From Macrostomum lignano (lineage: Eukaryota), in the NCBI GenBank assembly GCA_002269645.1, contig NIVC01000989.1, forward strand, positions 62,001-126,000: a stretch of DNA of 64,000 bases. Direction: 5' to 3'. Positions 14,877 through 30,039 of this stretch are shown in pieces. Below the pieces are notes generated by a model. That model was not told where the DNA came from. It saw nothing but the letters and a program-made list of their open reading frames with translations, and searched no databases. Position 1 is the stretch's first letter. The number at the start of each line of letters is the position of its first letter. A program made the translations under genes and the position numbers.

Positions 14877-16590
14877 ATGACTCTTCGACTGCAGGCCAGA
14901 CTAGCTGATGCCCTGGCTTCGGGTGAATTTTATGAAGCTCAGCAGCTTTACAGGACGCTCAGTTTCAGATTGACAGCTCGCGGCCAATATGACGAAGCGG
15001 CCAGTCTGCTGTACAACGGCGCCACAGCTTTACTAAACGAAGGTCTGCACGAAAGTGGCGGCGATCTGGCCTGCCAGATGGTGGCAGCGCAGGCCAAATC
15101 CACTGCCGAGCCGCCTAGCGCAGAGTTTGTCAGCCGGGTGTCCGCTCTGTGCAGACTGATGAAGCCGGGCTCGCCAGAGAGGGAAATGCTCACTGCTAAG
15201 TGAGTAGTATGACTGATTTTTTATTCTGCTAAAAATACTTTCTTCTGTCACTTAAATCATCTTATGATCATCTTATGATCATATCTTATGATCTTAAATC
15301 ATCTCTGACCCATTATCATCATCTTATGACCCACTATGCTAGTCATCTCATGACCCATTATTATCATCTCATGACCCACTACGATATTCATCTCATGACT
15401 CACTATGATAGTCATCTCATGACCCACTATGATAGTCATCTCATGACCCACTATGATAATTATCTCATGACCCACTATGATAGTCATCTCATGACCCACT
15501 ATGATTGTCATCTTATGACCCACTATGATAGTCATCTTATGACCCGTCATAACATCCATCTCATGACTCACTATGATAATCATCTCGTGACTTACTATGA
15601 TAGTCATCTCATGACCCATTATTATCATCTCATGACCCGCTATGATTGTCATCTTATGACCAGCCATGATATCCATCTCTATGACCCACTATGATAGTCA
15701 TCTCATGACCCACTATGATAGTCATCTCATGAACCGCCATGATAGTCATCTCATGACCCACTATGATAGTCATCTCATGAACCGCCATGATAGTCATCTC
15801 ATGACCCACTATGATAGTCAACGAATCCCATTTGCAATTGTCAATCATTACCAAATCAACCACATTCGCATAACGTTACAGTTTCAAGTACATTGCATGC
15901 GACACTGTTTCCATAAGCTATAATCTGCATAATTCTTTAATCCTACTCAGATCCATCGAACTACTGAAGCCTCATCAGGAATTAAAGCAACAATTGCACC
16001 GAGAATTCGGATTCAATTATTGGATTGAACGAAACTACAGCCTGTCCCAGTATCATTTTGTACGATCTAGCGATGCCGGCTATCATTTCGGTCGCATGCT
16101 AGTGGAGTACAGTCAGTTAGGTTACAAATCCGAGGTGGACTTGTTCCTTGCCCTCACCGTGTTGCAATTGTTGTGCTTAAAAAAGCTATCGCCAGCATCC
16201 GTGTGCTTCTACACGTACACTCGACATCATCCGAGTCTGCTTAGGACTCAAGCGCCGCCTTATCCGTCAAATTATCCGTTGTTAAATTTCACCTGGCTAT
16301 TATTAATGTCTATTCGTTCCAATTGGCCGCTGTCGTGTTTTCAATACCTGTGCCAGGTGTACAGGGCACCGCTAGATCGGGATCCAATCTGTGGTGAATA
16401 TCTCATCAAAATTAGTCAGCTTTTCTTCGGCGTACCAGCTGAGAAGACTGACCAGTCTGGTGGATTCTTTGGTAGTATTATGCGAATGCTCGCTACTGAT
16501 GATGCGGCTCTGGATGCTGAGGATGCGGAGGGGTCGGATCCCGGCGCCAACCACAATGCTGTCTCGTTGAAGGCTGACGATATGGACTGA
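14877..16590 (+). CDS. GET4: Golgi to ER traffic protein 4 (BAG6/GET pathway), 320 aa
   Basis: Exons 14877-15199 and 15951-16590 (GCTAA|gtgagt..ctcag|ATCC) total 963 nt in frame. Motifs: GEFYEAQQLYRTL, NYSLSQYHF, SEVDLF..VLQLLCLK, PLLNFTWLLL, YLIKISQLFFGVP. Confidence 0.93.
15260..15820. repeat. Minisatellite, 24-bp unit
   Basis: Unit CATCTCATGACCCACTATGATAGT; GET4 intron. Confidence 0.95.
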
Positions 16591-16709: not shown

Positions 16710-17335
16710 GCCAGCCTCCCAGATCCTCAGTTGCTGGGCCAGCCTCCCAGATCCTCAGTTGCTGAGCCAGCCTCCCAGAGTGTCAGTTGCTGGGCCAGCC
16801 TCCCAGATCCTCAGTTGCTGGGCCAGCCTCCCAGAGTGTCAGTTGCTGGGCCAGCCTCCCAGATCCTCAGTTGCTGGGCCAGCCTCCCAGAGTGTCAGTT
16901 GCTGGGCCAGCCTCCCAGATCCTCAGTTGCTGTGCCAGCCTCCCAGATCCTCAGTTGCTAAGTCAGCCTCCCAAATTCTCAGATGCTAGGCCAGCCTCCC
17001 AGATCCTCGGTTGCTGGGCTAGCCTCCCAGGTCCTCACTTGCTGGGCCAGCCTCCCAGATCCTCAGTTGCTAGGCCAGCCTCCCAGATCCTCAGTTGCTG
17101 AGCCAGCCTCCCAGATCCTCAATTGCTAAGTCAGCCTCCCAAATTCTCACTTGCTGGACCAGCCTCCCAGATCCTCAGTTGCTGGGGCAGCCTCCCAGAT
17201 CCTCAGTTGCTGGGCCAGTCTCCCAGATCCTCAGTTGCTGGGCCAGCCTCCCAGATCCTCAGTTGCTGGGCCAGCCTCCCAGGTCCTCACTTGCTGGGCT
17301 AGCTTCCCAGGTCCTCGGTTGCTGGACCAGCCTCA
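16710..17335 (+). repeat. Minisatellite, 28-bp unit (array A), ~22 copies
   Basis: Unit GCTGGGCCAGCCTCCCAGATCCTCAGTT, with variant ..CCCAGAGTGTCAGTT; downstream of the GET4 stop. Confidence 0.97.
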
Positions 17336-20132: not shown

Positions 20133-23100
20133 TTATGCAATCAAACACTTTGAACGTTTCCGATGCCTCAACTTTCTCACCGGCTTGAGCACACAGATTC
20201 GTCGCCTAGTGCACACCAGGATTTTGTCCTCGCCCAGCGGCGCTATCCCAGTGATCTCGTCCAGCTCCTGCAGAAACTGCAGCCGCTGGACGAAAATGAA
20301 CTCGCTCCTTCTGATCACCCAGAACAGCCTCTGGCGCTGGTTATCCGTGAAGATAATTCTCTTGTCGCTTGTAGTGATGATATGCGCCGGTACTGAATCA
20401 AAGATCTGAGTTGTTGTCAGCTTTCTGTACACTCCGGTTCTGTCATTCACAATCAGGATGTGACCTTCTGCTGGGCAGGAGACCCACAGCATCTTGCGCT
20501 CGCGTGTCCAGGTGACGTACTGCGGATGCAGATTCTCGAATGTGAACCAGTGCCCCGTGCGGCCCAGGCAGGGGGTGAAGAACTCCACTTTCTGATCCGA
20601 CGGCTGCGCCACCACCATGTCGCCGCGTCGACTGTCGACGAAGAAACCGGCAAACAGCGGCTCGTCTCTGCTGCCACCGGGCCGTTCGATCCGTTTGACC
20701 ACCTGACCGTCCAGCTGCAGACAGGCGACCACGGATAGCCAGCCAGTTGGGGCTCCCGTGGAGTCTGCAGCTTGCTGCTGCTGCTGCTGCTGAGCCACTC
20801 CGCTGACATAAACCAGACCGTTCACCAGCCGCATGTGATGGCACTGCAGCCTGCCTCCCGGGTTCGAATCTCCAATCAGCACCGGCAGGTCTTTGATTTG
20901 GCCTTCCTGGCTAGAATAGACTAGCAGCGATCTTGAGCAGCTGTTCAGCAGCACCAGCTCCGCCTGGTCAGTTGAGCCATCCGCGTCAGCCAGCAGTCCG
21001 GCCGCACCGATCTCCAGTTCGCCGCGAGTCGATTGGAGCAGCTCGGCGCAGGTTCCCATGTCGATCTCCTTCATCTTGTAGCTGCTATTTCGCTTCATAT
21101 TGTGCCTGATGAAGCTCAGATCCAGGGCGTCCTCAGCATCCGAGCTGTCGCTGCCGCCGCCGCCACCGCCGCCGCTGCCGCCTCGAATTTCGTCAAGATC
21201 GACATCGTTGAGGTGGTCGTTGACGGTCGGGTAGCGAGCTGCGGCAGCGGACGCGGCAGCGGACGCGGCGCCGAACTGATGATGATGCTGGTGCGCTCCA
21301 GCTGTCGCCGCCTCCATTGCGTCCTGCAGTTTCTGCGAGCGACTCTCCGCGTCGTCCAGCCGAGTGATCAACTTGTTGAGATTCTCGCGCACCGCCAGCA
21401 GCTCGGCCTTGTCGAATTCGCTCATCAGCGACATGCCGGCGCCGCCGCCAAGACCGCCGGCTCCGACCTCCTCAGAGCGTCGGACAAAATCCTCGGCCAG
21501 ATGGGCCAGGATCTCCTGCTTGCGCTCCAGGCTGCGCTTCCGGCTCCCGCCGCCGCCGCTGCCGCCGCTGAAGACGCCGCTGCTTCGACCTCTCGGACTG
21601 CCGATGCTCGAGGCGACTGCGGCAGCGGCGGCTGCGGCGGCGGCTGCGGCAGCAACTGCCGCAGTAGCTCCACCCTCAGTTGAGGCCTCTCCGCCGCTGC
21701 CGCTGCCACGGCTGCCGCCGCCGCCAGGTAACTGCAGCCGGCGACACTGCCTGTCTACAATGTACTTGATGATCGACTGGTGCACATGCGCCGGCGGCAG
21801 GCAGCGCAGACCCCCCGCTGGTAGTCTGGCTTCAACGCGGCATAGTGGACAGGGGAATCTGTCTCTGCTAGGCTGCTGGCTGTCCCACTTCTCCAGGCAG
21901 GTGAGGCAGAACACGTGAGAACAGGTGAGCAGTTTGGGCTCGAGCAGACGGCCCAGGTGAATCGGGCAGGTGGTCAGCTCTTCCAGGGATTCGATGCTGC
22001 CGCTGCTAGAGGACGAACTGGCGCAGCTGGGCTGCAAGTAAGACCATAGACGTAAGGGGTTACAGGGTTGATAATATTGAGTTACTATTGAGTAGCTCAG
22101 CGATAATTTTGCACTAAGAAATTGGCTAACCAACTGAAACAAGCTACTTAGTTATTCCCGGTTGTAAGTAGTATCTGATATGATACGAGCCATTTGGTTA
22201 ATTGTTCTTTGCCTGCTTGTATACTCTTTAATGATCCAAAGATCTCATACTCTCGTAGAAGATAGAGGAATGAGGAATAGAAAATTTGGTTGTGGTTGAG
22301 AAGTTTCTTCTCTATTGATTTTTATTTATAACTTTGACAGAGATTATATTAGATGTCATCAATTCCCGATACTGGAACTGGGGATCTGGAACTGGGGATC
22401 TGGAACTGGGGATCCGGAACTGGGGATCCGGAACTGGGGATCCGGAACTGGGGATCCGGAACTGGGGACCTGGAACTAGGGATCTGGAACTGGGAATCTG
22501 GAACTGGGGATCTGGAACTGGGGATCTGGAACTGGGGATCTGGAACTGGGGATCCGGAACTGGGGATCCGGAACTGGGGATCCGGAACTGGGGACCTGGA
22601 AATAGGGATCTGGAACTGGGGACCTGGAACTGGGGATCTGGAACTGGGGATCTGGAACTGGGGATCTGGAACTGGGGACCTGGAACTGGGGATCTGGAAC
22701 TGGGAATCTGAAACTGGGGATCTGGAACTGGGGATCTGGAACTGTTGATCTGGAAGTGGGGACCTGGAACTGGGGATCTGGAACTAGGGATCTGGAAGTG
22801 GGGATCTGGAACTGGGGATCTGGAACTGGGGATCTGGAACTGTTGATCTGGAAGTGGGGATCTGGAACTGGATCTAACTGGGGATCTGGAACTAGGGATC
22901 TGGAACTAGGGATCTGGAACTGGGGATCTGGAACTGGGGATCTGGAACTGGGGACCTGGAACTAAGGATATGGAACTGGGGATCTGGAACTGGGGATCTG
23001 GAACTGTTGATCTGGAAGTGGGGACCTGGAATTGGGGATCTGGAACTGGGGATCTGGAACTAGGGATCTGGAACTGGGGACCTGGAACTAGGGATCTGGA

Positions 23101-26100
23101 ACTGGGGATCTGGAACTGGGGACCTGGAACTGGGGACCTGGAACTGGGGACCTGGAACTGGGGACCTGGAACTAGGGATCTGGAACTGGGGATCTGGAAC
23201 TGGATCTAACTGGGGATCTGGATCTAGAAAAGAAATTACTTTTCCTATCTTGGACAGCTGCTGCTAGGAATTTAGGATTTTCGCATGCTCATGCTACTAA
23301 ATCAGCTTGTAAATAGTAGTGCACGGAACAAGATTGCAAGGTAGAAATGTGTCCTGCCAGAGGAAGCGCAGCACGCAGACACCATTAATTAGGAATGCAA
23401 TGTTTTGTATTCAATATGTATCAGACAGCCATATAAAGCATAAACATGCTTGTAATTTAATAGCTACATTCTGAGAGTAAATGAACGCCTTCAAACTCTT
23501 ATAACGAGACTATCGTTAGAGCTTGTTAACTAAAGCCATTAGCCGGAGCTGTTGTGTTGAATGCTTGTCTAATTGGAGAACATAAGAGAGACTATCGACA
23601 CTGTGCATGTTGCATGAACTCTATTCTCAAGGCTCAACTTGGCCTTTTTTCTCACAGTTTTTTTCTTTAGATTGATGAAGAGTTACATGCAGCCTACAAA
23701 GAAACCGGTTTTTACCAGCTACCTACTACACGTACTAAACAGTTTACATAGTACATAGTAAACTTGAAATGAGATGGTCTGCAGCAAAGAGCATGCGAAA
23801 CTCTCTCTATGTGTATGTTTTTGGTACTGAATATAGAAATTATTCTCTACATTTATTGGAGAGACCAAACTCTGTTTACCCGAGCTCTGCACTGCAACTT
23901 TGTATTGATTCTTCCCACGAGTCGATGCAACAGAAGCGGCAGTGCGTGGACAATATATATTCCACACGTTTCGTTTGATTGAGTTTTCTGTGTGCGTGCG
24001 TGTGCCGATTCTGTTTTGTGTATGATATTTTCGTTATTTATGTACTTTTGCAACTGAAGTGAGACGAGAGAGAGGAGGGAGATGGAAAGGAAGAGAAGGG
24101 ATAGTGAAGAGAGAGAGAAGAGGAGAGGGAATCAAGAGAATGCAGGAGAGAAGGAGAAAGGGAAGGGAGAGAAGGAAAGAGAAGGGAGGAGAAGGGCGAG
24201 ATAGAAGAGAGAGAAGGAAAGACAGAAGGGACAGAATGGAGAGAGAATATGGAGAGAAGGGGAGAGAATCATGAGAAGGGGAGAAGGGGAAAGAGAAGGA
24301 AAGAGAGAAGGGAAATAAGACGAGAGAGTATTGAGAGAAGGGGAGAAAGAAGGGAGAGAATGGGAGAAAGAAAGAGAGAAAAGGGAGAGAGAGAAGGGAG
24401 GGAAGAGAGAGAAAAGGAAGAGAGAGAAGGGAGGGAAGGGATAGAAAAGGGAGAGAGAGAGAAGGGAGGGAAGGGAGAGAAAAGGGAGAGAGAGAGAAGG
24501 GAGGGAAGGGAGAGAAAAGGGAGAGAGAGAAGGGAGAGAAAAGGAAGAGAGAGAAGGGAGGGAATTGGGAAAGAAGGGGCAGAGGGGATCGAGGAGGGAC
24601 AAAAGGGAGGGAATTGGGAAAGAAGGGACAGAGGGGAGAGAAGAGAGCAAAGGGAGGGAATTGGGAAAGAAGGGACAGAGGGGAGAGAAGAGAGCAAAGA
24701 GAGGGACGAGAACACAATGGAACAGAATCCAGCTTTACCAGCTCAAATAAATATCAGTGTGCAGCAAGCAGTGTTAGCAACTGAAACGCATGCAGTGCTT
24801 ATAGATTTTTAAAAACTAATTCTAACTGATATAGACAGTATAAAAACAGAACCTATAGCTACATGTAATTTTTTACAGGTATAGACAAGCACTTGGCTTG
24901 AATTCAGCGATATACTCGCGTAGTTACAATCGAAACAATAGCAAACAAATTCTACCTAGATATAGAATTGAACTCTAACCCGAAGCGCTGTTCTGCGTGT
25001 GCTATAGCTAGAACTGATAAGAATTCCCCTACAAGTCCAACTCTTGTCTCTCATTTTTGTCTGTTCCTCCCTTCTCTGCCCTCTTCTAAAAGAAGATTGC
25101 AGAAATAAAAAACTAATCTGTGTGTTTGTGTGTGTGTGCGTCTGCATTGCGGTGACCCCGTCAGCCCTTTGGTATCAGCAAATTTCAATGCACAATGGAC
25201 TTGCTTTAAGAAAAGAAAAGAAAAGACTGCAGAAACCCGAATGAACTATAACAGGCTTTGGTTAAACAACTTCTGCTTATTCAGGTTGGATCAGGGGAAT
25301 TCAGGTTGGATTAGGGGAATTCTGGTTGGATTGGGGGAATTCAGTTTGGATCGGGGGAATTCTGGTTGGATCGGGGGAATTCTGGTTGGATCGGGGGAAT
25401 TCTGGTTGGATCGGGGGAATTCTGGTTGGATTGGGGGAATTCTGGTTGGATTGGGGGAATTCTGGTTGGATTGGGGGAATTCAGTTTGGATCGGGGGAAT
25501 TCTGGTTGGATCAGGGGAATTCAGGTTGGATTGGGGGAATTCTGGTTGGATCGGGGGAATTCTAGTTGGATTGGGGGAATTCTGGTTGGATCAGGGGAAT
25601 TCAGGTTGGATCAGGGGAATTCAGGTTGGATTGGGGGAATTCTGGTTGGATTGGGGGAATTCTGGTTGGATTGGGGGAATTCTGGTTGGATCAGGGGAAT
25701 TCAGGTTGGATTGGGGGAATTCAGGTTGAGTTGGAGGAATTTAGATTAAATTTGGGGGGCTTCAGATTGAATCGGAGGGAATTCAGATTGAACCGAGGGA
25801 ATCGAGATTGAACTATGGGAATTCAGATTGAACCCGGGGAGTTCAGATTGAACCCGGGGAGTTCAGATTGAACCGGGGGAATTCAAATTGAACCGAGGGA
25901 ATTCAGATTGAACCGGGGGAATTCAGATGGAACCGGGAGAATTCAGATTGAACCGGGAGAATTAATATTAAACTGGAGGGATCATTCAATTTGAACCGAG
26001 GGAATTAAGAATGAATTTTGATAAATTAAACTACTTGAAGAATTTACCGCAATCCTTTATAGTACCGTTAAGAAGGTTCCGAAGAGTATAAATGAAAATA

Positions 26101-26228
26101 CCCCCTTAGCAACCAGATTAACATAGCAGAATAGCAAGCATAGAGTGGTAGCCATCATCTACCTGATCGCAGACGCAGGACGTTGAAGAGCCAGCTGCAT
26201 CATCCGCGGCTTCGCAATCGCTTTCCAT
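20133..26228 (-). CDS. RING-finger + coiled-coil + NHL-like beta-propeller protein with C-terminal polybasic-CaaX; putative E3 ligase, 654 aa
   Basis: Exon 26228-26163 ([22 protein letters not shown], donor CAG|gtagat) joins in phase 0 to acceptor ttacttgcag|CCC at 22031; the frame is open to TAA at 20133. [21 protein letters not shown] lies at 21968-21840, followed by a heptad segment and repeated beta-blade-like segments (e.g. [33 protein letters not shown]). Confidence 0.85.
22371..23225. repeat. Minisatellite, 14-bp unit, ~60 copies
   Basis: Unit GGAACTGGGGATCT; RING-gene intron. Confidence 0.97.
24060..24710. repeat. Polypurine (GA-rich) tract
   Basis: About 650 bp almost entirely G/A; RING-gene intron. 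Confidence 0.95.
25283..25960. repeat. Minisatellite, 20-bp unit
   Basis: Unit GGTTGGATTGGGGGAATTCT, grading into AGATTGAACCGGGGGAATTC. Confidence 0.95.
26163..26228 (-). CDS. Predicted first coding exon of the RING-propeller gene (absent from the ORF track)
   Basis: A CpG-rich 66-nt ATG-to-donor segment in an otherwise repeat/AT-rich intron; its phase matches the acceptor at 22031. An upstream acceptor-like ttctctatacacag near 26300 suggests a 5'UTR intron. Confidence 0.7.
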
Positions 26229-27276: not shown

Positions 27277-28435
27277 ATCTGGGAGTGTAGCGGGTGGCCC
27301 AGCAACTGAGGATCTGGGAGACTGGCCAAGCAACTGAGGATCTGGGAGGCTGGCCCAGCAACTGCATGAGGATCTGGGAGGCTGGCCCAGCAACTGAGGA
27401 TCTGAGAGGCTGGCCTAGCAACTGAGGATCTGGGAGGCTGGCCCAGCAACTGAGGATCTGAGAGGCTGGCCTAGCAACTGAGGATCTGGGAGGCTGGCCC
27501 AGCAACTGAGGATCTGAGAGGCTGGCCTAGCAACTGAGGATCTGGGAGGCTGGCCCAGCAACTGAGGATCTGAGAGGCTGGCCTAGCAACTGAGGATCTG
27601 GGAGGCTGACCCAGCAACTGAGGATCTGGGAGGCTGGCCCAGCAACTGAGGATCTGGGAGGCTGGCCCAGCAACTGACACTCTGGGAGGCTGGCCCAGCA
27701 ACTGAGAATCTGGGAGACTGGCCCAGCAACTGAGGATCTGGGAGGCTGGCCTAGCAACTGAGGATCTGGGAGACTGGCCCAGCAACTGCATGAGGATCTG
27801 GGAGGCTGGCCCAGCAACTGAGGATCTGAGAGGCTGGCCTAGCAACTGAGGATCTGGGAGGCTGGCCCAGCAACTGAGGATCTGAGAGGCTGGCCTAGCA
27901 ACTGAGGATCTGGGAGGCTGGCCCAGCAACTGAGGATCTGAGAGGCTGGCCTAGCAACTGAGGATCTGAGAGGCTGGCCTAGCAACTGAGGATCTGGGAG
28001 GCTGGCCCAGCAACTGAGGATCTGGGAGGCTGGCCCAGCAACTGAGGATCTGGGAGACTGGCCCAGCAACTGAGGATATGGGAGGCTGGCCCAGCAACTG
28101 ACACTCTGGGAGACTGGCCCAGCAACTGAGGATCTGAGAGGCTGGCCTAGCAACTGAGGATCTGGGAGGCTGGCCCAGCAACTGAGGATCTGGGAGGCTG
28201 GCTCAGCAACTGAGGATCTGGGAGACTGGCCCAGCAACTGAGGATATGGGAGGCTGGCCCAGCAACTGACACTCTGGGAGACTGGCCCAGCAACTGAGGA
28301 TATGGGAGGCTGGCCCAGCAACTGACACTCTGGGAGACTGGCCCAGCAGCAACTGAGGATCTGGGAGGCTGGCCCAGCAACTGAGGATCTGGGAGACTGG
28401 CCCAGCAACTGACACTCTGGGAGACTGGCCAAGCA
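27277..28435 (-). repeat. Minisatellite, 28-bp unit (array B), inverted copy of array A, ~41 copies
   Basis: Unit AACTGAGGATCTGGGAGGCTGGCCCAGC is the reverse complement of array A; the variant AACTGACACTCTGGG is also shared. Confidence 0.97.
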
Positions 28436-30039
28436 AAAATGCCTTTGTCAAAAATGCCTTTCTTCTAGCCTTCAAAGTATGCTCATTAGGCATCGAACCG
28501 TGTAAATGCATTGAAGCATATCAGATTGCAGAAGCAAGCACAGAGTAGACTGTACTTCCCTGTCCTTGACAACCAGAGGAGAGAGAGAGAGTTATGCATT
28601 CATGGGAGCTGATAGCAATGCTGGCAGAGGCGTGTAGCCTCCCCTCAGCCAGGGCTATTCCAGTGCAGCCTCTATTTACACAGCTGTCTACGCATATAAA
28701 GAAGTCTTGGCATGCTTGTAAAGTAATGTCAACTCTCCTCAACTGTTTTATTGCACGTCAGCAGATCACAGTAATGTGTGTCTTGTATTATTCTTCAAGC
28801 TATATAGTCTTACGTGTTCGTATATAGAATTATTTTACTGCATATATACTTTTTGGTTTAAAAGCATTACACTGAGTTGGTCATTTCCGTCTACAGAGGC
28901 TAATGTGTCTCGATTTTTTAGCGGTTTGCATAAATAATTTAAAGATTTCCACGCGGTCCTTTTATACAATACTCATCTGAGACTGTGCAGCATTTGTGAT
29001 GGGAATCCAGAAAAAAATCCAACATTTCACCTCCTTTTACGCTTGAATAAATATTCCGCCTGTAATAAATATCCCCCACTGTTGCAAAACATCGGGGGGG
29101 GGGGAGAGATCTGTCCCAATCTGCAGATTTCGTCTCTTATGATGGGTCCGTGTGTTGAATTCTTGATGGGAGTTGAGAATTTTGCCATCTCCTAATCCTA
29201 TCGGCCGTCTGTGACCGATAGGGATGGCGATTAGCATGCGTGTCTGCAGGCCGCCAAAGCGCGGGTTCCGGAACGCAACAGCTGGTTTTGGAATAAAAAA
29301 ATGCTCAGCTTCATAACAAAATGCAGCTATGGAAGAGAAGTAAATGGGTATAGATTCTCAGTGAGACTAATCCCCCAGCTTCATCTGCAAAGAGCAGCTG
29401 GAGAAGAGCAAAATGAGCCGGTCCTGTCCATGCAAAAAATGAAAACCTCTTACAGTTCAAATCCACATGTTTTCTTTGACAGCTCTCTGTCATCAAGTAG
29501 AAAGCCAGAGAAACGTGCAGTGCAACACGCGACTCGGCTCAAGAAAAAGTCATTTCAAATCAACTGGAAATTTAATCAGCAAGACGAGCAACGATCTCGT
29601 CATCCAGTGAGAGCGCCCTACTAATAATAATATTTATTCCTGGCCCAGAGCTATAGTTCAGCCACATCAAAGCTAGGACGTCAACAACACAGACTTGTCA
29701 AATAAAGCTGCAGTCTGTCGCTCTGATAGGAGGTATATATTATACTAATCCAAAAACATGTTTATGAATGCACTAATCTCTCAAGTGACGCGAAAATGAG
29801 ATCCTTCAGTTAATTAGCTTTAGCGCTAAAAGTACACTTGTACTGGTTCGCATGCACTCATGTAGTGCAGACAAACAATTAGCTAAGTAAGTCTGCGAAT
29901 AGTGTGCCTATACCCAACTTTTTTAGCTAGTTCTTTACCTGGGTAAGAAGACTCTTGGGCGAGTCTAACGTTGAGCTGTTGATGTGTAATTTTGTGTTGT
30001 TATGTGCCGTCGGCGTTTTGTTGGTTTTGGTTCTGTTAG

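Follow-up and report, generated by a model that had tools for sequence, protein, structure and literature searches.

A probable lipid-anchored RING ubiquitin ligase with an NHL-like propeller in Macrostomum lignano and its small flatworm family

TRIM-NHL proteins (TRIM2, TRIM3, TRIM32/Thin, TRIM71/LIN-41, Brat, Mei-P26, NHL-2) combine a TRIM-type RING, a helical segment and a C-terminal six-bladed propeller, and to our knowledge all of them are soluble; in TRIM71 and Brat the NHL propeller is a cytoplasmic RNA binder. NHLRC1 (malin), which lacks a B-box, joins a RING to a six-bladed NHL propeller. Among the ubiquitin ligases (E3s) that reside on membranes, TRIM13 and TRIM59 are tail-anchored by a transmembrane helix, the RING ligases ZNRF1/2, RNF11 and MGRN1 are N-myristoylated, and FBXL2, a prenylated F-box adaptor, is a ligase component with a C-terminal CaaX box (Cys-aliphatic-aliphatic-X). 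FBXO10, likewise a ubiquitin-ligase component, is set on membranes by its C-terminal CaaX (PMC11573457). The gene considered here occupies positions 20133-26228 of the minus strand in a 64,000-nucleotide window, the whole stretch of Macrostomum lignano DNA that was analysed (assembly GCA_002269645.1, contig NIVC01000989.1, positions 62,001 to 126,000 of the forward strand), to which all coordinates below refer. Direct reading and tblastn give it two exons and a product of 654 amino acids (aa), which has the same three elements as the TRIM-NHL proteins and ends in a polybasic stretch followed by a CaaX box. From its sequence we infer that the protein is probably a lipid-anchored ubiquitin ligase, a farnesylated RING E3 from the TRIM-NHL lineage, with lipidation, localisation and ligase activity all predicted. 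An earlier reading of this DNA from its letters alone, hereafter the sequence-only reading, had already proposed a prenylated, membrane-anchored RING-propeller E3, and the conserved CaaX, the TRIM-type RING and the propeller model described below support that proposal.

The prediction of a lipid anchor begins with the C-terminus. Thirteen residues encoded at 20186-20148 (AAG CCG GTG AGA AAG TTG AGG CAT CGG AAA CGT TCA AAG) include eight Lys or Arg and one His, with no Asp or Glu, and lead directly into the box CLIA at 20147-20136 (TGT TTG ATT GCA, then TAA), whose Cys stands exactly at position -4. The patch and the box are thus present exactly where the sequence-only reading had placed them. 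The box is of farnesyl type, with Ile at a2 and Ala at X, both accepted under the published rule for farnesyltransferase and geranylgeranyltransferase I. In the AlphaFold2 model disorder begins right after the last propeller strand, ICVLKP, and the tail is probably flexible because its predicted local distance difference test score (pLDDT) is low.

The tail opens with a plausible splice donor, GTGAGA (CCG/GTGAGA, 20175-20180, minus strand), at the junction with the propeller, and read-through into an intron therefore needed to be excluded. The M. lignano paralog P0002 (BOX15_Mlig004309g3), which is 55% identical to the window protein, has ACGCGT where the window has GTGAGA, and retains a 17-codon tail with the same stop codon (KPTRKLRRRRRPRCDLM). 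The homologous codon in the window is TAA (20135-20133, read directly). Synonymous sites between the two genes are saturated, the proportion of synonymous differences (pS) being 0.62 overall and 0.80 in the tail, and still 9 of the 17 tail residues are identical: every Lys or Arg stays Lys or Arg, the His becomes Arg and the Cys is kept (TGT/TGC), giving the paralog the ending RKLRRRRRPR-CDLM. Similarity of the exon extends to within 60 nt of the stop, and no conserved coding sequence was found 3' of it in the stretches compared (3.5 kb of the window and 6 kb of the paralog locus). Judged by these comparisons, the tail is coding and constrained. An alternative last exon, the possibility that the sequence-only reading had itself raised against its proposal, is not supported, given that the transcriptome-derived GenBank models carry the same last exon and nothing conserved lies in the downstream stretches compared. 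Two side observations concern this region. The donor at 20180, if ever used, would yield an isoform without the anchor. The Ser of the patch lies in an R-K-R-S context (20151-20162) that resembles sites of basophilic kinases and recalls the Ser181 electrostatic switch of K-Ras4B; it is not conserved, since the paralog has Pro in its place.

Relatives of the protein were collected with HMMER, the last 335 aa serving as query in an exhaustive scan of 1.84 billion representative proteins (E<=0.001). Just 15 sequences were returned, and every one carrying an organism name belongs to Platyhelminthes. M. lignano itself holds three paralog groups (Mlig023823/015500, Mlig004309 and Mlig013350). The other named members come from monogeneans (Protopolystoma xenopodis, Cichlidogyrus casuarinus), flukes (Trichobilharzia szidati, Opisthorchis felineus, O. 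viverrini, Clonorchis sinensis) and tapeworms (Spirometra, Sparganum), and the remaining relatives come from read-set assemblies; three of them (P0008, P0016, P0022) share one run and lie on uninterrupted contigs of 1.6-1.9 kb, and one member derives from a run (ERR14224705) that appears in a paper on coral microbiomes. Several relatives are on such transcript-like unbroken contigs, and direct reading of P0016 and P0022 places the stop right after the box. Literature searches on the Mlig gene identifiers found nothing. The family is small and undescribed, and flatworms supply all of its named members.

When the family is divided into 16 groups, each less than 50% identical to the others, a Cys occupies position -4 in 12 of them, with endings of the form Cys, any residue, an aliphatic or aromatic residue, and Leu, Met, Ala or Ser. 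Next to CLIA in the window group these endings are CDLM (P0002), CELL (P0003), C-CVVM with an adjacent Cys (P0004/P0022), CNFL and CNIL (P0005/P0023), CRIL (P0006), CNIL (P0007), CNLL (P0008), CNLS (P0013), CNVL (P0016), CSLL (P0015, Protopolystoma) and CGKL (P0009, Trichobilharzia). Position a1 varies freely (L, D, E, V, N, R, G, S), a2 is I, L, V or F in 11 of the 12, and X never leaves the set L/M/A/S (Leu in eight groups, Met in two, Ala and Ser in one each). The binomial probability of finding Cys at -4 in 12 of 16 groups is about 7e-18, calculated with a 2% background and with the groups taken as independent, a value that overstates the significance because the groups are phylogenetically related. 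Cys at -4, a free a1, a hydrophobic a2 and a restricted X form the pattern read by farnesyltransferase and geranylgeranyltransferase I. The CaaX is a family trait, and its position-by-position pattern is hard to explain except by prenyltransferase recognition. Yeast CXXX screens (PMC10320760) include CDLM (3.48 / 11.4) and CELL (4.15 / 1.04), values to which no weight is given here. Second signals are distributed in a similarly suggestive way: three of the four farnesyl-type boxes are accompanied by a strong one, namely a net charge of +8 (CLIA), of +9 (CDLM) or an adjacent Cys (CCVVM), with CNLS as the exception, and most of the boxes with X = Leu, which are of geranylgeranyl type, have none. 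In this small sample, the pairing matches the classical two-signal rule for farnesylated proteins.

At the other end of the protein, the RING finger (aa 44-87; 21968-21837, minus strand) reads C-x2-H-x11-C-x-H-x2-C-x2-C-x15-C-x2-C-R and matches the Pfam models PF13445 (28.7 bits) and PF00097 (26.6 bits), both over the cut-off. Its affinity to TRIM proteins is clear from sequence: 22 of the 30 matches among PDB sequences are TRIM proteins, the best being TRIM30, TRIM2, TRIM39, TRIM31, TRIM5, TRIM32, TRIM34, TRIM3, TRIM56 and TRIM21 (E 2e-8 to 4e-4). The first ligand pair is C-x2-H (His47, 21957-21959) instead of C-x2-C, and this is a family feature; the consensus of 13 aligned RINGs is C-x2-H/D-x11-C-x-H-x2-C-x2-C-xn-C-x2-C-R, the second ligand being His or Asp in every member and never Cys (CPIH, CAIH, CPVH, CSIH, CYIH, CPID). 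The other seven ligands are invariant in this alignment, and so is the Arg after the final Cys (13/13), while the Ile of C-P-I-H/D is replaced once (Val in P0017) and the Pro of C-P-x-C once (Ser in P0016), leaving each in 12 of 13. In well-studied RINGs this Arg is the "linchpin" that primes ubiquitin-charged E2 (E2~Ub), and the Ile and Pro are E2-contact residues. Their retention favours an active ligase, and we regard ligase activity as a likely property of the protein.

Between RING and propeller the protein departs from the TRIM plan. The usual place of the B-box is taken by a Gly/Ala/Ser low-complexity linker (aa 124-184 in translation; 21728-21546, minus strand), whose length varies between copies, and Pfam scans found no B-box either in the window protein (E<=1) or in 10-11 relatives (E<=0.01). 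The stretch from the linker to the propeller holds just two short conserved helix-like segments, both on the minus strand. One, a putative helix (aa 185-210; 21545-21468), recurs in P0002, P0003, P0004 and P0009. The other is a coiled-coil-like heptad segment (aa 228-264; 21416-21306), in which relatives keep D.AEL..V...LNKL..RL, and its heptad positions at 21404-21312 are hydrophobic or small (L, V, L, L, L, A, S, L, M) with unbroken 3-4-3-4 spacing over four heptads.

The C-terminal part was recognisable by structure. AlphaFold2, run on the last 335 aa with a 15-sequence alignment, returned a model of about 24 strands with pLDDT 86.3 and a predicted template-modelling score (pTM) of 0.85 (an earlier model from 3 sequences, at pLDDT 52, was not used), and together with Foldseek it delimits an NHL-like beta-propeller of six blades that has a helix at its N-terminus (aa 323-639; 21131-20181, minus strand). 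In Foldseek comparisons with the PDB the first ranks are held by the NHL domains of Drosophila Thin (TRIM32), TRIM71/LIN-41, Brat and Mei-P26, at probability 1.00, E 4e-10 to 1e-8, template-modelling (TM) scores of 0.5-0.68 and a sequence identity of about 15%. Also near the top stand virginiamycin B lyase, YncE and the designed Pizza6 propellers, and lower down the NHL domains of TRIM2 and NHL-2 (E ~4e-8). At the level of sequence the similarity vanishes: no Pfam model, NHL (PF01436) included, matches the C-terminal 335 aa of the window protein at E<=10 or those of the 15 family members, and the propeller profile finds nothing significant among PDB sequences (TRIM71 at E 0.22, NHLRC2 at E 0.88). 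With a TRIM-type RING at one end and an NHL-like fold at the other, the two ends of the protein agree in indicating the TRIM-NHL lineage.

The gene that encodes this protein is well delimited. Exon 1 (26228-26163, minus strand) begins with ATG, encodes the first 22 residues, all identical in tblastn (22/22) to those of the M. lignano protein P0001 (PAA52542, BOX15_Mlig023823g1; found by homologue search), and ends at the donor CAG/gtagat. A single phase-0 intron of 4.1 kb follows (22032-26162, minus strand), with donor and acceptor both read in the sequence and tandem arrays inside, and then exon 2 (22031-20133, minus strand) with 632 codons and TAA. The open frame at 22142-20133 has no ATG upstream of the RING, and since the good acceptor ttacttgcag stands in front of it (ttacttgcag/CCC), exon 2 is taken to start at 22031. 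A start at 22034, the end of the tblastn match, was rejected as it adds one Gln missing from P0001; that end is one codon off because the CAG of the acceptor mimics a Gln codon. The window protein is 97.5% identical to both PAA52542 and PAA87625, two hypothetical M. lignano proteins in GenBank, the differences being mainly poly-Ala/Gly indels, and its final 335 aa are 100% identical to P0001; the window copy is a third allele or homeologue in the partly duplicated M. lignano genome. The poly-Ala, poly-Gly and poly-Gln tracts (21546-21728 and 21150-21180) vary in length, and the product measures 654 aa in the window and 646 and 649 aa in GenBank. The M. lignano GenBank models stem from genome-guided transcriptome assembly (StringTie/TACO plus the mapped de novo transcriptome) with TransDecoder open reading frames (ORFs), and not from ab initio prediction (PMC5730564). 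The two exons form an expressed M. lignano gene, and the anatomy of gene and protein is near-certain. All structural elements of the sequence-only reading survive intact: its gene span is correct, both exons having been located with their splice sites; its N-terminal RING is recovered by Pfam models over the cut-off; its heptad segment is read directly as four heptads; its statement that B-boxes are missing agrees with the negative Pfam scans of the protein and its relatives; and its roughly six blade-like segments correspond to the modelled propeller, whose closest folds are six-bladed.

A mechanism can be proposed from these parts. Protein farnesyltransferase would place a farnesyl group on Cys651 (X = Ala, a2 = Ile), after which a CaaX protease would cut off -LIA and the new C-terminus would be methylated; that the protein is prenylated is, on its sequence, highly probable. 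The farnesyl group and the +8 patch could then bind an acidic inner-leaflet membrane, most likely the plasma membrane, in the manner of K-Ras4B, and the plasma membrane is, on the present analysis, a somewhat better candidate than all other membranes together. Held about 13 residues from the bilayer, the propeller would pick a membrane-proximal substrate or partner, and the RING, possibly dimerised via the flanking helices, would recruit E2~ubiquitin. Taken as a whole, the chain of farnesyl anchor, plasma membrane, substrate choice and E2~Ub seems to us moderately probable.

Several observations weigh against this reading, and the rival explanations draw on them. His or Asp as the second RING ligand is, in the aligned sequences, an unusual and conserved variant. 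The fold of the propeller does not imply a membrane role, as the NHL domains of TRIM71 and Brat bind cytoplasmic RNA. Four of the 16 groups lack a strict CaaX, and three of the four have species names, from flukes, tapeworms and a monogenean. Only two Macrostomum paralog groups, the window group (net +8) and P0002 (net +9), have the strong basic patch, and in the other members the 15 residues before the box sum to a net charge of -1 to +4. The expectation of the sequence-only reading that orthologs would share the tail therefore holds in part: the terminal Cys is kept in the paralog and in 12 of 16 groups, and the strong patch only in the nearest paralog. Finally, a ten-residue basic segment of the tail resembles a classical basic nuclear localisation signal (NLS), a role that basic patches can also play. 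This last resemblance is the starting point of one alternative, in which the protein is prenylated and sits at endomembranes or at the nuclear envelope, the patch serving as an NLS in the combination of NLS and CaaX seen in B-type lamins. Most family boxes have X = Leu with modest charge, a combination often found on endomembrane proteins, and the geranylgeranylated F-box protein FBXO10 targets mitochondria (PMC11573457). In the window protein, by contrast, the patch adjoins the Cys and falls in a stretch of predicted disorder. Moreover, a farnesyl-type CaaX that directly follows an unbroken patch of +8 or more is the established K-Ras4B-type signal for the plasma membrane, and an endomembrane or nuclear-envelope destination seems unlikely for this protein.

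The nearest folds of the propeller are RNA-binding NHL domains (TRIM71, Brat, Mei-P26), and the fluke and tapeworm members retain Cys-rich tails that are not CaaX boxes; both facts would suit a soluble TRIM-NHL-like regulator, for instance an RNA binder, whose terminal Cys would serve some purpose apart from prenylation, for example a C-terminal degron, metal binding or acylation alone. Such a protein would leave unexplained why the Cys lies exactly at -4 with a1 free, a2 hydrophobic and X limited to L/M/A/S, as prenyltransferases demand, and why farnesyl-type boxes are paired with second signals, and we consider it quite unlikely. A catalytically dead RING, with His or Asp in place of the second Cys, would turn the protein into a membrane scaffold; ligand 2 is not Cys in any member of the family and the Pfam scores of the RING are barely above threshold, but His and Asp can ligate zinc, and the invariance of the other seven ligands and the linchpin Arg (13/13), with the E2-contact Ile and Pro each at 12/13, makes loss of catalysis improbable to a high degree. 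Of an annotation artefact, in which KPVRK...CLIA would be intron sequence read as protein and the mRNA would be spliced at CCG/GTGAGA (20180) to a different last exon, little remains: GTGAGA following a G is indeed a good donor consensus, but the paralog that has no GT there keeps the 17-codon tail in frame, with its basic pattern, Cys and stop, 12 family groups share the ending, the gene models are derived from RNA and no conserved coding sequence was found in the downstream stretches compared, so that this explanation is hardly credible.

The four groups without a strict CaaX end in ...SCLK (P0010, stop verified), ...GCCSWPS (P0011, tapeworms including Spirometra), ...DCTSIFSC (P0014, opisthorchiid liver flukes, identical in three species) and ...HKVSM (P0012, the monogenean Cichlidogyrus). 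The fluke and tapeworm tails (P0011, P0014, P0026-P0029) are Cys-rich, and GCCSWPS and DCTSIFSC are each conserved within their clade. In yeast reporters three-residue CaX ends are farnesylated to a varying degree (PMC11152559). The Cys-rich fluke and tapeworm ends and the CLK end suggest either a changed anchor chemistry or mis-modelled last exons. It is tempting to arrange the whole family, with the lipid-anchored E3 of the window among its members, into one history, for and against which the case appears to us evenly balanced: Platyhelminthes may have evolved lineage-specific single-chain RING E3s from a TRIM-NHL ancestor by losing the B-box and gaining a C-terminal prenyl anchor; the Macrostomum paralogs may have independently reached a K-Ras4B-like combination of farnesyl and polybasic patch, others an H-Ras-like adjacent Cys or geranylgeranyl alone; and flukes and tapeworms may have swapped the box for Cys-rich tails.

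The surroundings of the gene are rich in repeats. The intron (22032-26162) consists almost entirely of tandem arrays, a 14-mer repeated 61 times (22372-23222), GA-rich arrays (24145-24706) and a 20-mer repeated 34 times (25279-25963), and these arrays are the reason for long spurious repeat ORFs inside it. A 28-bp minisatellite, GCCAGCCTCCCAGATCCTCAGTTGCTGG or its reverse complement, flanks the gene at 16710-17334 and 27295-28436 in opposite orientation. Downstream, and convergent with the RING gene, lies a GET4 homologue on the plus strand (14877-16590), whose two coding blocks match Pfam PF04190 (E 4.7e-10 and 1.5e-34) and are separated by a gap containing an array of a 24-bp unit (15319-15820); both GenBank contigs have this neighbour too.

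Compared with the TRIM-NHL proteins, the window protein lacks a B-box and any sequence match to NHL (PF01436), has a short helical region and reaches only about 15% identity when structures are aligned; it further differs in the His at RING ligand 2 (His/Asp in the family) and in the C-terminal CaaX. It is TRIM-NHL-like and not a member of TRIM-NHL, as two defining features, the B-box and sequence-level NHL repeats, fail. Malin resembles it in having RING and propeller with no B-box, and differs in its recognisable NHL repeats and in having neither a conserved helical linker nor a CaaX; the exhaustive profile search found no named non-flatworm protein at E<=0.001, and no comparison was aimed at malin. 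With the K-Ras4B-type signal the protein shares the Cys-aliphatic-aliphatic-X end, an X of farnesyltransferase type and at least 8 basic residues in 13 on a flexible tail. The signal is carried here by a RING-propeller protein instead of a small GTPase, its basic residues are a mixture of Arg, Lys and His rather than a run of Lys, and a patch of this type is conserved in the nearest paralog only.

GenBank and UniProt already contain the sequences themselves, labelled "hypothetical" or "RING-type domain-containing" proteins, and the novelty lies in recognising the family and the anchor, not the gene. Literature searches turned up no description of the family, of its fold, of its conserved lipid-anchor motif or of its confinement to flatworms among the members with names, and they found no prenylated RING or NHL ligase; together with the missing Pfam and PDB sequence matches for the propeller, this agrees with the impression of the sequence-only reading that the architecture belongs to no named family. 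As all named members come from flatworms, among them flukes and tapeworms of medical importance, the family could explain lineage-specific biology. It would also provide a natural series of anchor variants on one scaffold (farnesyl with basic patch, farnesyl with Cys, geranylgeranyl, Cys-rich). Transgenesis works in M. lignano (PMC5730564), which makes the prediction directly testable in the worm itself. Ubiquitin ligases with a lipid anchor select the membrane-proximal proteins that are to be marked, and against the described ones the predicted protein stands apart in its construction. TRIM13, TRIM59, ZNRF1/2, RNF11 and MGRN1 are likewise RING ligases on the cytosolic face of membranes, but their anchor is not an isoprenoid and they have no propeller, and FBXL2 and FBXO10 are geranylgeranylated F-box adaptors that need a separate RING subunit, whereas the window protein would bear RING and anchor on one polypeptide. 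If this holds true, the flatworm proteins would constitute the first family of RING E3s in which a CaaX is conserved, as far as literature searches show, and their union of RING, NHL-like propeller and CaaX would mean a new way of building a membrane E3.

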